Assembly: GCA_946965045.2 (NCBI GenBank)
Contig: OX337234.1
Coordinates: forward strand, 1,488,001-1,552,000
Reading direction: 5' to 3'
DNA from: Epithemia pelagica
Lineage: Eukaryota; Protista; Bacillariophyta
Length of the DNA stretch: 64,000 nucleotides
The translations under genes and the position numbers were made by a program. Under the pieces are notes generated by a model. It was given only the letters and a program-made list of their open reading frames with translations. It made no database searches and was not told the DNA's origin. Shown piece by piece: positions 40,328 through 50,515 of this stretch (within the stretch, counting starts at the first letter, position 1; each line of letters opens with the position of its first letter).

Positions 40328-43300
40328 GGTATGGGCTGTTGATAGGACGAATTGAAAAGTGTGAGAAATTGTTGGTCAGAGAGAGAAAACAATCGTGAGG
40401 CATCGTCGGCGAGGCGGTTGTGCTGCCCCGGGAAGTATGAGACTTGATGGATGTACCGATGTTCACGTTGATGTAGGCTGGCTGCCCGAAGGATGTAGGA
40501 GGCTGGGCTCGAGGACGTGACACTGCCAGCGTTGTTCCAACCTACGGACGCTGTGTTGTCGCAACCAGTGGCTATTGTGCGTTCTCTGATATCGATGCAG
40601 GACCCCAGGACATCAGCATGTAGGAGTGTGGCTGCCAGTTCGAGGTCATTGTTCGTAATGGGGCCTCGAGGATTGGAAGGGCTCTGAATATGCGGGACAA
40701 GGTTGGGTGGCAAGGGTAAGCGCCAAACAATAGGGGGATGGGCTGGTGTGTGCCGGGATGGTCGCTCGGGAGGTAGCCAGACTCCGCCGAAACCGGATGG
40801 CGCCGCGTCACAGGCTCCGACAAAACTTGGGTGGCAAGGTATGACTTCTGCAATACGCGTTGGTCGATTGGCGACATCAAGTGCAAGTGTCCATAAGTCT
40901 TCAAGTTGGTCTTTGGTGGGCTGTTCCAACGTGACGAACCTTTTGTCGTGGTTCTTGGACAGAGCTAGTTGAAGATGGGAAAAAAGGCCACGGCCGCCCG
41001 GGATGCCCAAGAGCATGCTCCGAAGCTCTCCAAGCAATTTGTGCCACTGCAGTATGGGTACTGACTGTTTGCCGCGCACGGCTTGCAAGATGGAGAGGAG
41101 TTTGGCACGTCTGTGTGGTGGTAGCTCTATGGTTTGTCGCCAGGTGTCAATATCCCAGCCGAGGACTGTCTTGAAAGTAGTCCAACAGCCGTCGCCCCGC
41201 GAGAGTTTTTTTGCTGAAATGGGTTGTCGGCGATCACAGGCGTCGTCTTGGTCGTCATTCGGGCAGAAGATGGCATCGGTGCAGTGCATAAGGGTGCGAC
41301 GAATGCGATTGAGACGAGAGCGGGAGCCTTGTGCGACTTGGATGGTGTCATCCAAATAGACGTCGGTGTAGGCAATGGGTCCACGACGGTAAGGGAGATA
41401 TTTAGACCGTGACGGAGGTGGGTTCTGGGGGAAGATGTCGCGGAGCTGTTCTGGGGAGAGGCGAACCACTGTGTCTTTGGGTGGCGGGGGTGGGATGGCA
41501 ATGGTGACGCGTTCGTCGTGGGGACGGGGGGGGGGGGGGGGGAGTGGAGCTCGCCAGTTGTTCCATCGGGTGAGGTGGTGGATCCCAGCTGGATGTGACT
41601 GTGAGTTGGTTGGCTAAATTGGCGATCGTCTCGGTGAAAGCCGTAAACTGTGGGGGACTCTCAGTCCATCCCATGGGAAGGGTTACGGGAAAGGCGATAA
41701 GGTCGTCGGTGGCGTCTTTCCCACGGGGCAGCACCACACCGAGTCTTGGGACGTCTGCTGGGGCCAAAGGGACACGGTAGAACCCGTCGGACAGATCAAT
41801 TTTGAGGAGGTATACTGGGCCATGCTGTGGCGGGGCCGAAAGGATGGTGCGTAGGATTCGCTTGAGTGTACCACCGAATTGCATGGCTTCGGGGTGTGCC
41901 TGGCGGTTGGTGGTGGCGTTTACTCCGCTGAAAGTGTAATCGACGATGATACGCGGTCGGCGCTCACGCTAGGGAACACAACCGATGGGAGAGATGCGTA
42001 GGTTGGGAAGGCCACGGACCTGTTGAAAGGGGAGGACCAACCAATAGCCGCGGGCGACCATGTCGGCCATGTCGCTGTAGAGGAATTCTTGGAATTCTAG
42101 CGCGCTTTTGTGACAACCTCTTGTGGCTGCCATGACGCGCTGACCGTCGGTCCATTCGTGATCAACGGAGAGGACGGGTACTCCGGCTTGTCGGAATTCG
42201 TCGAGAATGGTTGCCGCGTTGTGTGGCAGACGGGAGATGAAGGGGGCAATGCACGACCGCCCGCGTGTACGATGGATAAACTGTGTCCAAGGTAAAGACG
42301 AGACCTTTGTCTCTTTGGAGACTGCGGGGACTTGGTTTGTCGCTGCACCAGCGCTACGGGCACGAAGGGTCACTGCGTTGCGCAGGATGGTGAGGTGCTC
42401 ACCCTTGTCAGCGTTGGATAGTAGATGGTACACGGCCGGTAGGTTTGCTTCGGAAGTGACGGATGCGAAGGCCATCCAGTCTTTGGCAACCGTTTTGTAC
42501 TTTGTAGCAGGTGGTAATTTGTCGCCTTTTTCCGCCATGCGACGTGCTTCGTCTGTCGCTCTTTCACTTGCTCGATCATTGCGCATGGCACCGAGGATAG
42601 TGGCGACTTGTTCGGTGGCACCGGTAGGGACGGGAGCGAGTAGTGTAGGTATATCTCGCGTTAGGACGGCCCAACGGTGTCGATCAAGGGGCTCGTCATC
42701 AACCACTGGTGTGAAGGTGGTGGGAATGTCACCTAGGAAGGTTGCAGGGTCTGCAACGTTTCGAGACTTGGCGGTTGACGCCACGCGGAGCCAGGCGAGC
42801 AATGGTGCGCATGCGGCTTGGTTGTTGTCGGTGTTGATGGCGACTGAGAGGGTAGTCCATGCTTCGCGTGGTGACAGTGTCTTCCCGAGGACGAGAGGGA
42901 CATACTTCCATGGGACAGGAAACAGGTGGCGTGTGACAACGGATTCGGAGTTGGCTGCACTGGCGGCTAGAGGCGGTAAGAGCTCGATTGTGGTGTCCGC
43001 TGCCCAGGCGGCGTCCATGGTGGCCGTTGTTGCCACTCGTTGTGCGTCGGTAGGTTCGAAGATGGATTGCGGCGTTTCGTAGGTCTGGATGAAGTTGCTT
43101 CCTGGGCGAATGTCGCCGTGGAAGAGGAAGAACTTGTTGTTCCATTGCGGCGCTGGGGCGGCGAGGTCTGGCTCGTAGGCGGAAGGGCGATGGAGAGCGA
43201 TGATCTTTCTTGCGCCATCGATCGACACTTGGGCGAGGAAGACCTTTGGAATCGTATTCGCAGACTTGACGACCGTTTCGAAGAGTTCCTCGGGCGTTTG

Positions 43301-43441
43301 GGTGTTCCCGGTTGCGAAAGGCAAGAAGAGTGGAGTGTAAACTCCATTGAACACATCCTTCATCTGCTTGTAGCGTGTGAGGTAGTTGGTGGGCGACGGT
43401 GCCGCCTGTTGTGGCGTCGCGGCTGGTGGAGCGGCGGCCAT
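39994..43441 (-). pseudogene. gag-RT-RNase H reading frame of YR element 2, with a nonsense codon (41969-71) and a +1 shift in a 17-nt G/C run (41526-42)
   Basis: ISPIGCVP*RERRPRIIVDY (TAG where Gln is expected), KIDLSDGFYRV, LPMGWTESP, YLDD, ACDAAPSG, ITNNDLEL, GCDN and NRLADDASR. Confidence 0.87.
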
Positions 43442-44092
43442 GGTGCTTAGCTATCTACTTCAGCAGTCTCTCGTGACGGCCAAAAGGAAAGAATGAGCTC
43501 CTTGCCACAATGTGACAATCGAGAAAGTGTGACGACGCCGGGCGAGCGCGCCGGGCCAGCAGTGTCAACTCGTCTGTCGTGCGTACCGCAACTCCAATAC
43601 GGTATCTAGCTAGAGGCTGAATAGTCGAACCTGATTCTTCTTTCATGCAAAGGGGATCACAGTGTAATGGGTGACGCCATCAGTATCAGTACCATCTTCG
43701 ACTTGATGTTACTCTGGATCTAGGTAGTCTAATAGAGATGTCCTTCCGCACTGGTTTTGCAGCTAATAGAATCGGTCGCGCGGGTCTCCTTGTCCACGTT
43801 GCGGCGTCAACCCAAAACTACTCCTCAGAATCGTTTACAAGAAAGGGATTAGCGGAACGAAAGAATTCTTATTGTGTGAATCACTCCTTCTTCCTTAGTC
43901 TATATGTTTGCACGCTAGGCGTTCAGAGGTTATTTTAACCGAACGTTACCGAGACAGCGGAATAATGGTGTACGCTCTGTGTCCTGCGTGAGCTTGTCCA
44001 CAACCATCGATCTCGAGTTTTCCTGTGATGAGAACGAGGAACTGTTTGCTGCCTCTCTCATTTGTTGAGAGAAGGACACTCTCAACAAGAGC

Positions 44093-47000
44093 ATGAAAAC
44101 ACAAATTTTTGGATCTGGATCGGAAACCGACGAAGACACCAACCACATGTCGTCCTCCTCCAGTGACGATGAGGAAGGAAAATCTTTTGTTGTGGTTCCG
44201 CACAAGACGCAAGACTCAGGAGAAAGTGAAACTTCGAGGGCCATTGATCCCAAAGATTCCGAGTTCACAGGATATCTTCAAGAAATCGAGAAACCCCAAG
44301 ATTCTTCGCGAATGAGAGAAAAGGACAAGGCACAAGGCAATTGGTTGGTAGATAACAGCAAAGTTCCCAGTGAGATGATCAACGCTTGTCACTCTATGGA
44401 AGACGGCAAGAAGAAAGAGAAAACGCTTCGAGAAGTCCGGTTCGCTCCGAGCGCCCCCATGGAACCTCTGAGTGAAGCTCCCATGGAAAAGGAATTGACA
44501 GATATTGAAATTGCGAAAAAGATGTCGCTTGGAATATCCACAGGTCCTGTCGCGCTTCGCTCGGAGCGTGCGCCGTCACCATACATTCCTCGAGACCCTG
44601 AAGAGAATGTGTTGCCAGAAGACCAGAACATGGAAAAGCAACACATGCAGCTACGTTCAACGAGAACTCCGAGCTTTAGCGATCGGCGCTCCATAATCAA
44701 GACAAGTAGCCAGTATCATGATGGAGACCGGTTTTACGACACCAAGATGCACGGAGACCATTTTTACGACACCAAGATGCCTCCCACACGGAATCATCCA
44801 CTTCGAGACTATGATGTGGATGCTGCTACGACTAAAGAAGAGATGGATATGATGGAGGCTATCAGCAAGTCCCTTCAAGAGTCCGACCCATACTCGTCGC
44901 GTGCAATGACAAACCGAGGAAAAGGAGCGGCTACAGCTTCGATCGCTAGCGGACGAGGAAGACAGCAGGGAAGTTGGCTCTCTCACTTATGGCCTAGAGC
45001 ACCACCAGCCCCACCTCGAAACGACCGAGGTGGGCGAACGATTGCACAAGGAGTCAAATCACAGTACACTTATGAAGGTGGTCAGGTGGCATGTACATCG
45101 ATTTGCCTCGTCGCTGCGCAAAGTTTCTTGACGGATGATCCAAGCGAGTGGGAGCATTTGCAGGGCAGAGCCCTAGATCATTTTGTAGAGGAAGGAATTG
45201 CCCGTCACTTCAATCACGGCAAAAAACACAGCTCTGTGGAACAGCTCTGGGGCCTTCAACTGTTTGCTGATGTCGCTGGAAAACTGGAAATGGGGTGTCC
45301 TTTTCAGGGAAGCGTTGCAAACCGAAACCATTTACGCACGGCGTTGCAGCGGGCCCACGAATTTGCTTTCACTGACAAGAACAGTCCTTCACTTGCCGTT
45401 GTGTTCACCAAGTCTGGTGAAACCATTTTGTGCATCAACTCCATCTTTTCGGAAGAATGGATGTTAATGGATAGTCATGGACAATCTCATGAAAAGGATA
45501 AGCGCATTTATCTCAAAAGCTTCTCTTCGTTGGACGCTGTGGTGGCGTTCTTGGCGAAAAAATACCCTGCGATGCATCTGGGAGATGGATCATTCCAAAG
45601 TGAAATGTACGACATGTTTGAAACGTTCCCAATTATTCGCCGTGAATCACGAGAAAGCAATAAAGATGACCAGCCAGAAGAAGAAATTATGGTCCAGTTA
45701 CCATCCTCCTCTGTGTGTCACAAACTTGTTCTCAAGTCTGAAACGCAACTTGACAAACATCAAGAGGAAGTAGACAAAAGCTCATCCAATAAGTCCATTT
45801 CTTCACCAAAAGACCCCCCAGTGCCACCCCTGAAAGATGAATCAATGAGAGATGAATCAAATCCTCGGAAACGAAACATGAAAGACCCGCCCATGAAACC
45901 GGACGGTCCGGAAAGTGAAGTGGATTCAATAGAGATGGAATTGGAAGACCATCCACGAAAAGAACCCCCGAACAGCTCCTCTGAGGAAAAAGCTGGAAAG
46001 CAGTCTGGCGGTGCGGTTGAATCGTCCCCTTTTTTCGTACAAAGCGATTATGAAGATCCCGTCACTTGTCAAATTATGGCGGATCCGGTCACTTGCAAAG
46101 GTAATTTGAATAGTCTTCTGTGGTTGCTTATCAATCGACTGAATTCTCACCCCAAACGCTTTGATCAATTCATTTAGATGGCCAAACATACGAGCGTTCA
46201 GTCATTGAGAGGTGGTTTCGAGAGAGAGTGCAGGAGGAAGAAAAACGGCGTCGAAAGGAGCAGGAGGGGGAGGATCAGAAAGAAGATGATACATGCTGTG
46301 GCGCACAACGACCTATTCAACTTACGAGCCCAGTTACAGGAAAAGAAGTCTCCGGTGATCTCGTCCCAAACCATACTTTGGCTCAACAGATTGTTCGTCT
46401 GATGGAGGTTAATGCGTTCAAAATGTCTAATGAAGAAATTGAGGAATGGAAAAAGCGACGAAATGAGAAGCATGCAAACGACCGAAAACGAGAAGAACTG
46501 GAACGAGAAGAACAGGCTCGGGTTGAAGAGAGGCGCCGAAACGCTGAAGAAGCCGAAAAACGAAACCGTGGACGTAGCAATGACGGAACCGCTCCTGCGG
46601 ATGGCCCTGGGTCCGCAGCGGTTGATCCTTCACAATTGGTTCGTTTGGATCGCGAAGTCGACAACTCATCTACCTTGTCCACGGGTGACACTGGCCTTTC
46701 ATGCGCTTTGGGGAAGCCTTCGACCTTTATCCCTAGAGAGATTGCGATGACTAATGGCATTCTACGATGCATGGTCCATCGTTGTACCACACGATTGGGT
46801 CAGGATCATGATATGTGGTGTTCTCGTTGCGGCCGTCTTGTTTGTGAGAAGTGTCTTGCGTTTGGCGTCACAGATATTCAATCTACGAGTAATAAGACAC
46901 TTCGCAATATTTGTGTTGATTGCATCACGCAGATTGCTGACGTGATGGACTCCGGCGATATCCATCTTCAACAGAAGAGGGTCGTCCTCACTCGCACCAT

Positions 47001-48402
47001 GGAGAGTCGACACAGTGCTAGATTCTCTAGTGCAGCTTCACGTCTCCAAGACGTCGTCGTCCTTCACGATGTCCAGATGCGCCATGCTCCGGACCAAGCT
47101 CATATGGAAGAAACCGTGTATCAGCTGGAAGTAGAGCTTGCACGCCTCAAGCGGAAGGTACGACAGGCGTCGGAACGTGCATCTGCAGCACGCGAAGATA
47201 ACCCACATGTTGAGCACGAAACTCTGATTGAGAGGCTTACGCAAGAATGTTCCTCATTGGAACAAGAGTTTGCGACTGCAACAGAGAATGAACCTCCCGA
47301 GGCTGAAGAAGAAGCTATCCGTTATTTTGAGTCTTTCAGTGACATTTCCTTCCGATTGGAATCGGCTCGCATGGAACTCGCGACTGCGTTGTCCAATGGA
47401 CCACCCACAAGGAGTAAAACCAAGAACGACGACTCGGTACAAGACGACTCGGAAGAGGATTCTTCTCCGATATTGAACACGCCTGCTGGTAAAATTAAGT
47501 CCATGGAACGAGAATACGCAGAGCTGAAGGCACGCTATGATTCGTTGCTGGAAGAGCCAGAGGGTGAACACGAAGAAGAAGCATTCAACAGGGCGGTTGA
47601 AGTAAGTGCTTTGCAGGCGTCCTTAGAGGAAGTACAAACCCGACTTGTTGTAGCGAGATCAGAGTACAATGAGGCCACTTCAAAAACGCCTGACGAGGTT
47701 ACAAGGGCACTTGAGGATCTGGAAGCCCTCGGCAAAAGTCATGACGACTGGCCTTTGCCGCTCGGCCTCAGCAAAGTTTTCCCGACGTCCCGAATGGAGC
47801 AGCAGATGGAAATCCTACAGAACACACTGGAACTACGCCGCGTCGAATCTGAACGAGCAGGCGAAGAAGAATGGGCTAACCAGATGGGACGTTGGGATTC
47901 TCGACAAGATGAACTTGAAGCAGAAATTGCTAGCACCCGAGCAACACTGGAGGATGCGGAGCGAGACGCGAAAGAGGAAGAACGCCAAGCTCAAGTTCGA
48001 GCGGAGGAGCGTCGTCAACGAGAGCTTGCTCGTCTGGAGCGTGAGCGGGTCCTCCGGGAACAGGCTTTGAAAGCAGAGCGGGAGCGTGCTGAAATGGTTG
48101 CCCGTCATCGTCGAGAAGAAGATGCTACAAGAGATGCTTTTGCCAGAGCCGCAGGCGATAGCAATAATGGTGCCCAAGCATTCGGTGGATCTGGCGACCT
48201 TCGTATGTGCAAAAGGTGCAGAGCCGGTCCGATTGAAAACAAATACTGCACAGATCTGGCAGCTCACAATGATTCGTCATCTAGTTACAAGGGAGAGACG
48301 GTAAGAGCAAAAAGTAAGCCCAATCACTGCCCTCACTGTGATTGGTTTGACGCCAATTGGCACAACTGGCCGTACTGGGATGGAGTTTACGGGCCACACT
48401 AG
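44093..48402 (+). CDS. Multidomain ubiquitin-system protein: UIM, C76/VTD-like cysteine protease, U-box, FYVE-like finger, coiled coil, C-terminal Cys-rich finger (exons 44093-46100, 46178-48402; 1410 aa)
   Basis: The phase-1 GT-AG intron 46101-46177 restores the U-box DPVTCQIMADPVTCK|DGQTYERSVIERWF...SPVTG...LVPNHTL. Also EEMDMMEAISKSLQES, SQY...ACTSIC, LMDSHG and CSRCGRLVCEKC...CVDC. Confidence 0.8.
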
Positions 48403-48695
48403 AACCGACATTTATCTGTCAACCCATGATACAAAGGTTCTGTAGTGAGAACCTGCTGGCTTCTTTTGTACCTTAAGATTGGCTCCAAGGAGGACATCTA
48501 TATTATGCCATTATACATGCTGCTATTCATCGAAGAAATGTTTCCTTCGACTCTTATTCGTCATCTTTCACAGTCAAATTGGTGACAATGTTAGTATGAA
48601 GCTTGACACCGGCAAAAGGCATATGCATAGGTTGACGGGACGGAAGAAGAGACAGAAGATACCGACTGCAAACCAAACCAAGTGATTGAACATGT

Positions 48696-50515
48696 CTAAT
48701 ACGTTCCCCTGTGTGCGGCCATTATAAAGCAGAAGCAGCAAAACGTCGTTGCATAAAGTACGAGCTCTCCAATGACCTGGACTGCGTTCATCGACGACAT
48801 GTCACTAACACAGAGGAGTGGAGAGTCTTTCTTCTGACTAGGGGGGCTTTGGATCTTGACCCCAGCACTTTCGCCGCTCGCTCGAATAAGCATGGGCTGC
48901 AACTCAACGCTCCCGCTTCCAGGATTAGAGTCATCGTCCTCTAGATAGATATTTTCAACGTTCTCATCTTCACTGGCATTGGTTTTGACTGCCTCCCATT
49001 CGAATCGCAATAAGCCCCAAAGCATTCTTCGAATGATTTCAGCAGATCCAATGACAGGCCCCAAAATGTGCGTTGCCCAATTCCCCACCAAGTTCTCGGT
49101 GAGGACACCGGAAGCGTTCAGGTAGTGGAGAGGGACAAAGCTAAGCGTCCAGCAAAACCGGAGAACAATATTGATCCAAGCAATTGCCCAGTAGAATGAT
49201 GTGCTCTGATAAAGCCGTTTGGAGCGGAGAGAACCCTTCCGATCAATCAAATTCCAGTCCATATATACATCCCACCAACACTGATAAAGTGTGGCAATGA
49301 CAAAACTTGCCAGCCAGACAATATTATCCTTTTTGTCGGGATGAAAAACACCAAACATCGCTACCTGTGCAGCTAAAAAGTACTTGAATGCATTTCCCAA
49401 ATAGGGCCATCTTTGTCGTTCATCAAAAACTTGCCGTAGATTCTGAAGAAAACGCCACCAAAGCGGTGATGCGGAGCAAACTGGCAACTAAAGATCAACG
49501 CCAATATTGTGTGAGACGTATGGTTTCTCAGCTGTTTGCCTCTCCATTCAAATTACCTTTATCTCTAGGCGTTTCAGAGACTCACAACAACTGTATGGAC
49601 AATCCAGGAACGTTCCATTTCTGGGACGCTCGCGTCGGCCGTATCAAGAAAGTTAAAATGTCTGTATTCATGTGTCGACCACCACCCCTTGAGGCCAAAC
49701 ATTATGTAAAACAGAGTAAACGAGATATCTTTCAAGGGACGAACCGACGATGTAATGACATCTCCAATGAAGCCATCTCGAAATGAAATAGGGAACCATG
49801 GTGCCCCCCATGTGTACGACACAACTGTCCAGAATGGGCGTCGGCTCTTTGACCAAGGGAAGAATGCCCTGTAGATGAAGAACACAAACAGGATCAAGGG
49901 AAATGTCGGGGCAGCGACTGAAGAAAACATCGACCAAAAGGCATTGGCAGCATCCCCTTTGTATTCTTCACGAGAGGAACTGAGGGTGAAAAGAAAGAGC
50001 GTTACCAGTATTGCCAGGAACATGTCCAATGCAACATTTGTCACTTCCAGTGGTGTAACCACTGAGTCTGAAGTGTTTATGGGAGGTTGAACTTCACCGT
50101 CCTCAGCATAGTCAGCATCCAGAGCTTTCTCCTCCTGAAATAAGGCCTCATCGCCTCCAAGTCCACCACGGGTTCCCTGCAATGCTGCTTCATCGTCTCC
50201 AAGGTCATCACACTGGTCTTCCTCAAGACTCTGAGGGTTATTTGACGCCGTGTGTCCACTGGTATTCTCCTCACCAAGTGGAGGTTGGAAAAATAGCGAT
50301 CGAACAGCACCAGTCCCAATTGATTGCGTCCACAAGGAGAGAGAAACTGCCGCACAAAAAAACATCAAATTTACTTCCAACAGAGCTCGGAAGATTCGGT
50401 AACTCGGTTCATGTTGTCTCAATGCGCTGAACACATTGAAAGACGAATCCCCTATCAACCATATTGCAAAGATCAATGCAACTGCTAAGAGAATCTTTCG
50501 AACACGTCCAACCAT
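48696..50515 (-). CDS. EXS-domain membrane protein (XPR1/PHO1/SYG1 family; exons 50515-49586, 49487-48696)
   Basis: FRDGFIGDVITS, PLWWRFLQNLR, YLGNAFKY, WWDVYMDW and EIIRRMLWGLLRFEWE. GTGAGT...TTTAG intron at 49488-49585. Confidence 0.85.

Follow-up and report, generated by a model that had tools for sequence, protein, structure and literature searches.

A spliced diatom gene predicted to join a VTD-type deubiquitinase and a U-box ubiquitin ligase in a single polypeptide

The window analyzed here is a 64,000-nucleotide stretch of the genome of the diatom Epithemia pelagica (contig OX337234.1, positions 1,488,001 to 1,552,000), and our subject is a gene on its plus strand, at 44093-48402, that is predicted to encode a deubiquitinase and an E3 ubiquitin ligase in the same protein. 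Two long open reading frames (ORFs) lie head to tail at this locus, one at 44093-46177 (694 amino acids) and the other at 46228-48402 (724 amino acids), and they differ in frame. Removing 77 nucleotides (nt) at 46101-46177, which have the GT..AG ends of an intron (junction sequence ...TGCAAAG/GTAATT...ATTTAG/ATGGCC..., with slashes marking the splice sites), unites the two frames in phase 1 through a split codon, G/AT, for Asp. The spliced frame comprises 669 + 1 + 740 = 1410 codons, with exons at 44093-46100 and 46178-48402:

44093..46100, plus strand: exon 1, an open frame of 669 codons and one further base, which begins the split codon, collinear with a contig of public sequencing run X5 over 44103-46098; it carries a disordered N-terminus rich in Ser, Asp, Glu, and Lys, followed by the predicted VTD domain, a linker, and the opening third of the predicted U-box
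46101..46177, plus strand: intron of 77 nt, GT..AG, phase 1, inside the U-box, skipped in the X5 contig
46178..48402, plus strand: exon 2, which opens with the second and third bases of the split codon and continues with 740 codons and a stop codon, assigned by frame continuity

Splicing was observed when contigs of four public runs were placed on 43800-48700. In run X5, a 2,705-nt contig matches 44103-46098 and then 46176-46884; the 77 nt missing from it have GT..AG ends and are precisely those that the initial annotation had proposed as an intron, and the contig bridges both ORFs rather than representing a transcript of either one alone. Further X5 contigs cover 46905-48337 and the region from 48308 onward, and the break between contigs at 46885-46904 coincides with two polymorphic sites (46885 and 46895). 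Contigs from runs X2 and X4, which are DNA-like and come from the same study as X5, retain the intron and run through the upstream spacer. Since X5 has no coverage upstream of 44103, it behaves like a transcriptome, and we infer from the splicing and from the start of its coverage at the 5' end of the gene that it is an RNA library. Two short contigs with at least 99% identity to the gene were also found in a metatranscriptome (X1). The locus is thus one expressed, spliced two-exon gene. Given that the X5 contig begins 10 nt 3' of the first ATG (44093), the true start could be the next in-frame ATG, at 44147. Across 44273-48663, the window differs from the X2, X4, and X5 contigs at 18 single bases, probably through allelic or strain variation; one of these differences (A>G at 44843) lies inside a motif resembling a ubiquitin-interacting motif (UIM) that is described below.

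Pfam searches with both whole ORFs gave neither protease nor U-box matches. The domains emerged only from relatives, profile searches, and structure models, with the two exons analyzed separately throughout. The initial annotation had pointed to a papain-like Gln...Cys and Asp-x-His arrangement in the first ORF and had likened it to the herpesvirus large tegument deubiquitinases (peptidase C76) and their cellular VTD relatives. Both motifs are present at the positions given there, within the following predicted domain:

45026..45640, plus strand: VTD-type cysteine deubiquitinase domain (predicted), residues ~312-516, from a profile match to the PDB, fold, and conservation
45062-64, plus strand: Gln324, invariant
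45092-94, plus strand: Cys334, within SQY-x7-ACTSIC (45059-45106)
45227-41, plus strand: HSSVE motif
45293-310, plus strand: Pro-Phe loop, GCPFQG
45470-78, plus strand: Asp460-Ser-His462 (DSH)
45584-637, plus strand: conserved C-terminal helix segment, residues 498-515, following the VTD core

A word search with residues 300-530 recovered four relatives from public assemblies (40-44% identity), each with a precomputed U-box match, and their alignment contains an invariant Gln, an ACTS(I/V)C box, and the sequence DSHGQSHE. When the resulting five-sequence profile was compared with PDB sequences, it gave a single match, to Wc-VTD1 (8ADB/8ADC; E=2.8e-11, profile positions 29-196), the Waddlia chondrophila enzyme whose structures represent ubiquitin-bound and apo forms (PMC9741609). 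Cys334, Asp460, and His462, in the "flipped" triad order typical of VTDs (Cys before Asp-x-His), align with Cys313, Asp440, and His442 of this enzyme, in which Asp440/His442 complete the triad and the C313A mutant is listed as catalytically inactive (PMC9741609). The Glu of HSSVE aligns with Glu363, mutation of which abolished Wc-VTD1 activity, and the Pro-Phe of GCPFQG aligns with Pro383-Phe384, the loop that holds the Ile44 patch of ubiquitin (PMC9741609); the Phe of this loop is an Arg in relative P0002. Gln324, the candidate oxyanion-hole residue upstream of the catalytic Cys, is likewise invariant in the relatives, and the hidden Markov model alignment to Wc-VTD1 begins after it, so its equivalence to the structural Gln falls outside the range of that alignment.

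The Pfam family Herpes_teg_N (PF04843) did not match the diatom protein at E<=1, and weak, sub-threshold matches to it were found only in the distant relatives P0126 and P0133. Since the protist, fungal, and bacterial VTD group is too divergent for direct detection (PMC9741609), the missing match does not exclude membership in the VTD family. Fold comparisons agreed with the profile match. When an AlphaFold model built from the five-sequence alignment was searched against the PDB with Foldseek, ranks 1 to 6 were occupied by 8ADC, 8ADB, 8ADD (a zebrafish Helitron VTD), and 2J7Q (murine cytomegalovirus M48), with E values from 5.7e-10 (8ADC) to 4e-05, and AvrPphB came next. VIA-align gave Z scores of 15.0 for 8ADC (173 residues), 14.3 for 8ADB, 12.6 for 8ADD, 11.5 for 2J7Q, and 9.9 for AvrPphB, an order that agrees with the order of relatedness in the paper that described the VTDs (PMC9741609). 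Residues 13-217 of the model lie on residues 291-493 of the 8ADC chain, a range that spans helix alpha-9 and that denotes the first and last aligned residues only. This helix is present in all K6-specific VTDs (those specific for ubiquitin chains linked through Lys6) and has been tied to K6 specificity, the structural basis of which was left undefined by Erven et al. 2022 (PMC9741609).

The catalytic residues are also conserved well beyond these few sequences. An exhaustive profile search of 1.84 billion representatives returned 344 relatives at E<=0.001, of which 19 reach E<=1e-30. All 19 domain copies present in the 18 long representative relatives that we inspected retain the Gln, Cys, Asp, and His. 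A complex prediction for the VTD domain with the genome's own ubiquitin (score 0.26, mark 0.34) counts as evidence neither way. Because the profile match, the fold match, the alignment of catalytic residues, and this conservation all point in the same direction, we conclude that residues ~312-516 belong to the VTD deubiquitinase family (extended peptidase C76) and retain its catalytic residues, and that the domain is closest to the K6-type VTD branch. The relationship to C76 and VTD enzymes suggested from the sequence motifs thus held up in both the profile and the fold searches.

These data also bear on whether the protein might be a ligase only, its VTD domain being a catalytically dead ubiquitin-binding module like the inactive VTD copies that exist in insects (PMC9741609). 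Since fungal and Naegleria K6-type VTDs are unreactive with ubiquitin probes (PMC9741609), a negative probe result would be possible for the diatom domain as well. Inactive VTDs are, however, defined by loss of the very residues that are invariant here (Gln324, Cys334, Asp460, and His462, 19/19), and the equivalent of Glu363 and the Pro-Phe loop are kept too, so a dead domain seems quite improbable.

The second enzymatic part of the protein, a U-box, straddles the intron:

46043..46100, plus strand: U-box N-terminal part, SDYEDPVTCQIMADPVTCK and base 1 of the Asp codon, aligning with the start of the relatives' U-box
46178..46407, plus strand: U-box remainder, comprising the GQTYERSVIERWF helix, a charged insertion, and TSPVTG...LVPN...IVRLME
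46219-46323, plus strand: U-box insertion, ~35 charged residues, with a Cys-Cys-Gly motif at its end

Relatives in which this region is unbroken align with both the last stretch of exon 1 (SDYEDPVTCQIMADPVTCK) and the first stretch of exon 2 (GQTYERSVIERWF), and a single alignment column separates the two exon ends. That column is an Asp in every relative, matching the Asp of the split codon. The U-boxes of the relatives score 30-38 bits against a gathering cut-off of 21.4 bits, with Pfam matches mostly confined to profile positions 3-40; in relative P0019, a match of 37.8 bits bridges the insertion and takes in positions 3-66. Diatoms and a dinoflagellate alike conserve the insertion together with the U-box halves on either side of it. 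The exon ends therefore abut in register, as expected from the earlier proposal that the U-box is completed only by splicing and carries a charged insertion.

Public gene callers list the exons as two separate proteins of 694 and 724 residues (P0001/P0156 and P0006/P0157, on two ENA contigs of 809 kb and 341 kb), so the fusion is hidden in current automatic annotation. Read at face value, these calls would mean two genes, one for a deubiquitinase and one for a FYVE/coiled-coil protein, with a U-box that spans the gap between them by coincidence. This is already contradicted by the spliced contig, which bridges the ORFs with exact GT..AG removal; moreover, the abutting exon ends restore a conserved Asp, and the relatives encode the same order of parts in one protein. 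We regard two separate genes as barely credible.

The complete order (VTD, U-box, FYVE or FYVE-like finger, helices, and C-terminal finger) recurs in at least nine representatives, so the phyletic distribution extends over diatoms and a dinoflagellate. The latter, Effrenium voratum, encodes a 915-residue protein (CAJ1342649.1) annotated as "FYVE-type domain-containing protein." The Fragilaria crotonensis protein KAI2489292.1, annotated as "hypothetical protein," contains a VTD and the FYVE-like core, and its U-box scores below threshold (18.4 bits); neither the C-terminal finger nor the WPLPL motif described below was found in it. A variation on the same layout occurs in the close relative P0011 (2018 amino acids, on a 1.2-Mb ENA contig), where two near-identical tandem VTDs (Asp-x-His at 591 and 1009) precede the U-box, the FYVE-like finger, and the C-terminal finger.

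Taken together, these results lead us to favor, with a probability of roughly 70%, a reading in which the locus is one two-exon diatom nuclear gene for a ~1410-residue VTD and U-box protein, a putative ligase with its own chain-editing or guarding deubiquitinase. Its core, a VTD-type deubiquitinase and a U-box E3 in one spliced polypeptide, is what the initial annotation had put forward, and it is supported by the profile match to Wc-VTD1, the fold matches, the bridging contig, and the above-threshold U-boxes of relatives with the same layout. Several points weigh against this reading. The VTD model is of middling confidence (predicted local distance difference test [pLDDT], 71.7), and K6 preference is suggested only by closeness to Wc-VTD1. 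The organism label and study of X5 are shared with the DNA-like runs, and its library kind is absent from the record. The activities of the VTD and U-box, their linkage preference, and the localization of the protein are predictions.

The remaining points concern the U-box itself. Scanned separately, each exon piece falls below the U-box cut-off: exon 2 matches Pfam U-box (PF04564) at positions 23-40 only (E=0.025, 15.2 bits versus the 21.4-bit cut-off), and the exon 1 piece gave no U-box match but only a weak one to zf-Nse (E=0.061). The ~35-residue insertion interrupts the domain between the helix and the second loop, and the canonical Cys-Pro-Ile is Asp-Pro-Val. Together with the largely partial matches of the relatives (positions 3-40), these features would suit a protein that is a deubiquitinase only, whose decayed U-box, devoid of ligase activity, serves as a scaffold for the binding of an E2, a chaperone, or ubiquitin. 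Conservation of the insertion and both halves from diatoms to the dinoflagellate, the nearly full-length match of P0019, and retention of the fold-defining hydrophobic and Pro residues argue against such decay, which we consider unlikely, though it deserves more weight than the other alternatives discussed here.

If the protein is indeed a ligase with a built-in deubiquitinase, its U-box would recruit a charged E2 and build ubiquitin chains either on a substrate or on the protein itself. The adjoining VTD domain would then trim particular linkages, most likely K6, and this trimming would either edit the type of chain that the ligase makes or guard the ligase from its own ubiquitination. The FYVE-like and C-terminal fingers could supply localization or bind substrate or ubiquitin, and the helical region probably oligomerizes the protein, as in other U-box ligases. 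The parts of the protein follow one another in the order disordered N-terminus with one or two UIM-like motifs, VTD, U-box, degenerate FYVE, charged helices, WPLPL motif, and C-terminal finger. The parts other than the VTD and U-box are as follows:

44486..44536, plus strand: UIM-like motif 1, EKELTDIEIAKKMSLGI, with a hydrophobic-x-x-Ala-x-x-x-Ser core and without the trailing acidic residue
44837..44884, plus strand: UIM-like motif 2, EEMDMMEAISKSLQES, which fits the strict UIM pattern
46768..46923, plus strand: FYVE-like eight-Cys finger, Pfam FYVE (PF01363) at 25.5 bits versus a cut-off of 27.8
46957..48153, plus strand: long charged helical region, from composition and a crude heptad scan, containing the WPLPL motif
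47743-47847, plus strand: DDWPLPL...RMEQQ motif, common to P0008, P0011, P0013, P0014, P0015, and P0140
48193..48399, plus strand: C-terminal finger, the last 69 residues, from a twelve-sequence alignment

The finger that follows the U-box has eight Cys in FYVE spacing and lacks the RRHHCR patch, as first noted; scanned alone, it remains below the FYVE gathering score. The WxxD motif is also missing, and DHDMWCSRCG stands where RRHHCRxCG would be expected. The FYVE domain of the Effrenium orthologue is, in contrast, canonical (RRRHHCRRCG, E=1.3e-13, 51.3 bits). By this comparison, the diatom finger appears to be a degenerate FYVE that has lost its phosphoinositide (PI3P) patch, and for this reason the endosomal role that had been suggested cannot be read from it and is unsupported.

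The long coiled coil of the initial annotation is plausible. Beyond the FYVE-like finger, four charged runs of 37-88 residues (exon 2 residues 260-303, 305-341, 463-503, and 571-658) lack Pro and Gly and abound in Glu, Arg, Lys, Gln, Leu, and Ala; a fifth Pro/Gly-free run, of 67 residues, directly follows the U-box. The crude heptad scan, an unvalidated predictor, flags only residues 305-341. The last run (571-658) looks rich in Glu, Arg, and Lys and could instead form a single helix.

The C-terminal C-x2-C...HN...CPHC-W finger proved to be strongly conserved and always terminates the protein in the twelve-sequence alignment. With residues numbered from 46228, the first codon of the second ORF, the invariant positions are Cys661, Cys664, Cys674 (48247-49), His680-Asn681 (48265-70), Cys701, Cys704, four Trp, and the terminal His724. 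They form the pattern Arg-Met-Cys-x-Arg-Cys-x-x-Gly-Pro, a lone Cys, Leu-x-x-His-Asn, a second Cys pair, four Trp, Asp-Gly, and His. Searches with the finger returned only noise-level zinc-ribbon matches in Pfam at E<=10 and nothing in a sequence profile search of the PDB. Its AlphaFold model was of low confidence (pLDDT 65); Foldseek found no match to it, and the best hit of a wide VIA search was an NZF finger at Z 2.1. When small stand-alone proteins bearing the finger were sought by word search, only fragments of the same protein family came up. As far as these comparisons go, the finger is a conserved module that is known only from this protein family and has no family assignment.

The first 16 residues of the finger resemble the start of an Rcat domain of RBR ligases (CxxC, nine residues, Cys). 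An assignment to Rcat/RING2 was rejected: when compared by hhalign with three Rcat domains encoded in this genome, the finger aligned over only 16 columns, with a probability of 2.6%, and it has a single CxxC...CxxC site versus the two zinc sites that an Rcat requires. Clusters of the IBR family reached 0.80-0.82 in a protein-language-model look-up, under the level that counts.

A more speculative idea is that the finger is a new catalytic or ubiquitin-handling module, in which the lone Cys and the His would play the part that the active-site pair has in an Rcat. The protein would then be a U-box/Rcat-like hybrid ligase, its U-box passing ubiquitin from the E2 to the lone Cys of the finger, with a K6-type deubiquitinase built in. 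If true, the protein would be a counterpart of the fungal VTD-RBR fusion, arrived at along another route. We give the idea little credence.

In the N-terminal region, the "reader" function proposed from a UIM-like motif is tentative. The pattern itself is there, since EEMDMMEAISKSLQES fits the UIM core (an acidic run followed by hydrophobic-x-x-Ala-x-x-x-Ser-x-x-acidic, 44837-44881), but 6.7% of composition-preserving shuffles contain such a pattern by chance, and the position is unconserved in relatives. The area of motif 1 gave a weak Pfam Ubiq-assoc match below the cut-off (E=0.012-0.037). Canonical UIMs occur in two other family members, before the VTD in P0027 and C-terminally in P0024; motifs for ubiquitin binding thus seem to be gained and lost within the variable regions of these proteins.

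The genomic surroundings raise the question of whether the VTD domain is cargo of a mobile element, of the Helitron type or another, rather than part of a host gene. Most non-viral VTDs lie in Helitrons (PMC9741609), and the window is rich in mobile elements. Just upstream, on the opposite strand (41969-43441, minus), lies a 490-residue ORF without a Pfam match that is possibly part of a mobile element; its stretch has a GC content of 55-57%, versus ~48% around it. Against this idea, the genome (60.5 Mb, 23 contigs) holds one copy of the gene and one distant UBA-VTD paralogue on another contig, the gene is expressed and spliced, and other diatoms and a dinoflagellate carry orthologues that share its five-part layout. 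Neither a Rep/helicase nor an endonuclease domain was found in the gene in a Pfam scan of its ORFs, and it contains no transposon features. Mobile cargo is thus highly improbable. The paralogue (contig G000:C11, locus L002, 1144-2859, plus strand) has a 571-residue frame that matches the VTD profile at E=6e-10, with the motifs SQY...SACTCIAL and VDSHPRP and a UBA-like segment preceding the VTD. On the downstream side, the neighbor is convergent and encodes the C-terminal part of an EXS-family (ERD1/XPR1/SYG1) membrane protein (48696-49487, minus strand; Pfam E=5.6e-38). Since the X5 contig that starts at 48308 crosses the stop codon into the EXS gene, the 3' ends of the two genes may overlap.

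Among known systems, the closest to the diatom domain is Wc-VTD1 (wcw_1294; 8ADB, 8ADC), which is both its best sequence match (E=2.8e-11) and its best fold match (Z 15.0) and which shares the catalytic Cys, the Asp-x-His, the Glu that reads the C-terminal tail of ubiquitin, and the Pro-Phe loop. Wc-VTD1 differs from the diatom protein in being a bacterial effector without a ligase domain, and the identity is only ~22%. The murine cytomegalovirus deubiquitinase M48 (C76; 2J7Q) shares the fold (Z 11.5 over 182 residues) and the Cys...Asp-x-His order. In contrast, the herpesvirus tegument deubiquitinases show no detectable sequence match to the diatom domain, have a beta-hairpin in place of the diatom Pro-Phe type of loop, and prefer K48 linkages.

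The Effrenium protein CAJ1342649.1 resembles the diatom protein throughout, with a VTD, a U-box with an insertion, a FYVE domain, a helical region, a WPLPM motif, and the C-terminal finger; it differs in its canonical PI3P-type FYVE (RRHHCR) and in missing the long N-terminus. Neither this protein nor that of Fragilaria is annotated as a deubiquitinase or a ligase. Functionally, the proposed pairing recalls A20/TNFAIP3 and CHIP-ataxin-3, in which a deubiquitinase and an E3 act together and edit the type or length of chains. A20 uses an OTU domain and a zinc finger, whereas CHIP (a U-box ligase) and ataxin-3 (a papain-fold deubiquitinase) are separate proteins; to our knowledge, neither system is homologous to the diatom protein beyond the U-box.

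The nearest precedent for the architecture comes from fungi. Erven et al. 2022, who defined the VTD family, demonstrated that Wc-VTD1 and VTDs from fungi and Naegleria are K6-specific (the K6 subgroup comprises Wc-VTD1, Nf-VTD, Si-VTD, and Sl-VTD) and reported an RBR ligase fused to the VTD in most Agaricomycetes (PMC9741609). Before the fungal and protist VTDs, no truly K6-specific eukaryotic deubiquitinase was known, and their role was called "enigmatic" (PMC9741609). K6-linked chains are among the least understood ubiquitin signals. Full-text literature searches found no VTD/U-box or U-box/FYVE/deubiquitinase protein of diatoms, and the main text and examined supplements of the VTD paper mention neither U-box, FYVE, nor diatoms (PMC9741609). 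The claim of an undescribed architecture therefore holds for the combination with U-box and FYVE but not for the fusion of a VTD to an E3, which is known from the Agaricomycetes (PMC9741609); the five-part U-box version and its spread over diatoms and dinoflagellates appear to be undescribed, while the VTD family and the principle of VTD-E3 fusion were already known. Compared by description rather than by sequence, the fungal and diatom proteins both combine a K6-type VTD with an E3 ligase in one polypeptide (PMC9741609), but the ligase is an RBR (RING-IBR-Rcat) in fungi and a U-box in diatoms and dinoflagellates, and the FYVE domain, helical region, WPLPL motif, and C-terminal finger are unreported for the Agaricomycete fusion. 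The diatom gene also encodes a conserved C-terminal zinc finger without family assignment and, as a second, independent K6-type VTD-E3 fusion, suggests that such deubiquitinases may be built-in editors or guards of the ligase to which they are joined, an idea that is testable in diatoms, which are genetically manipulable.

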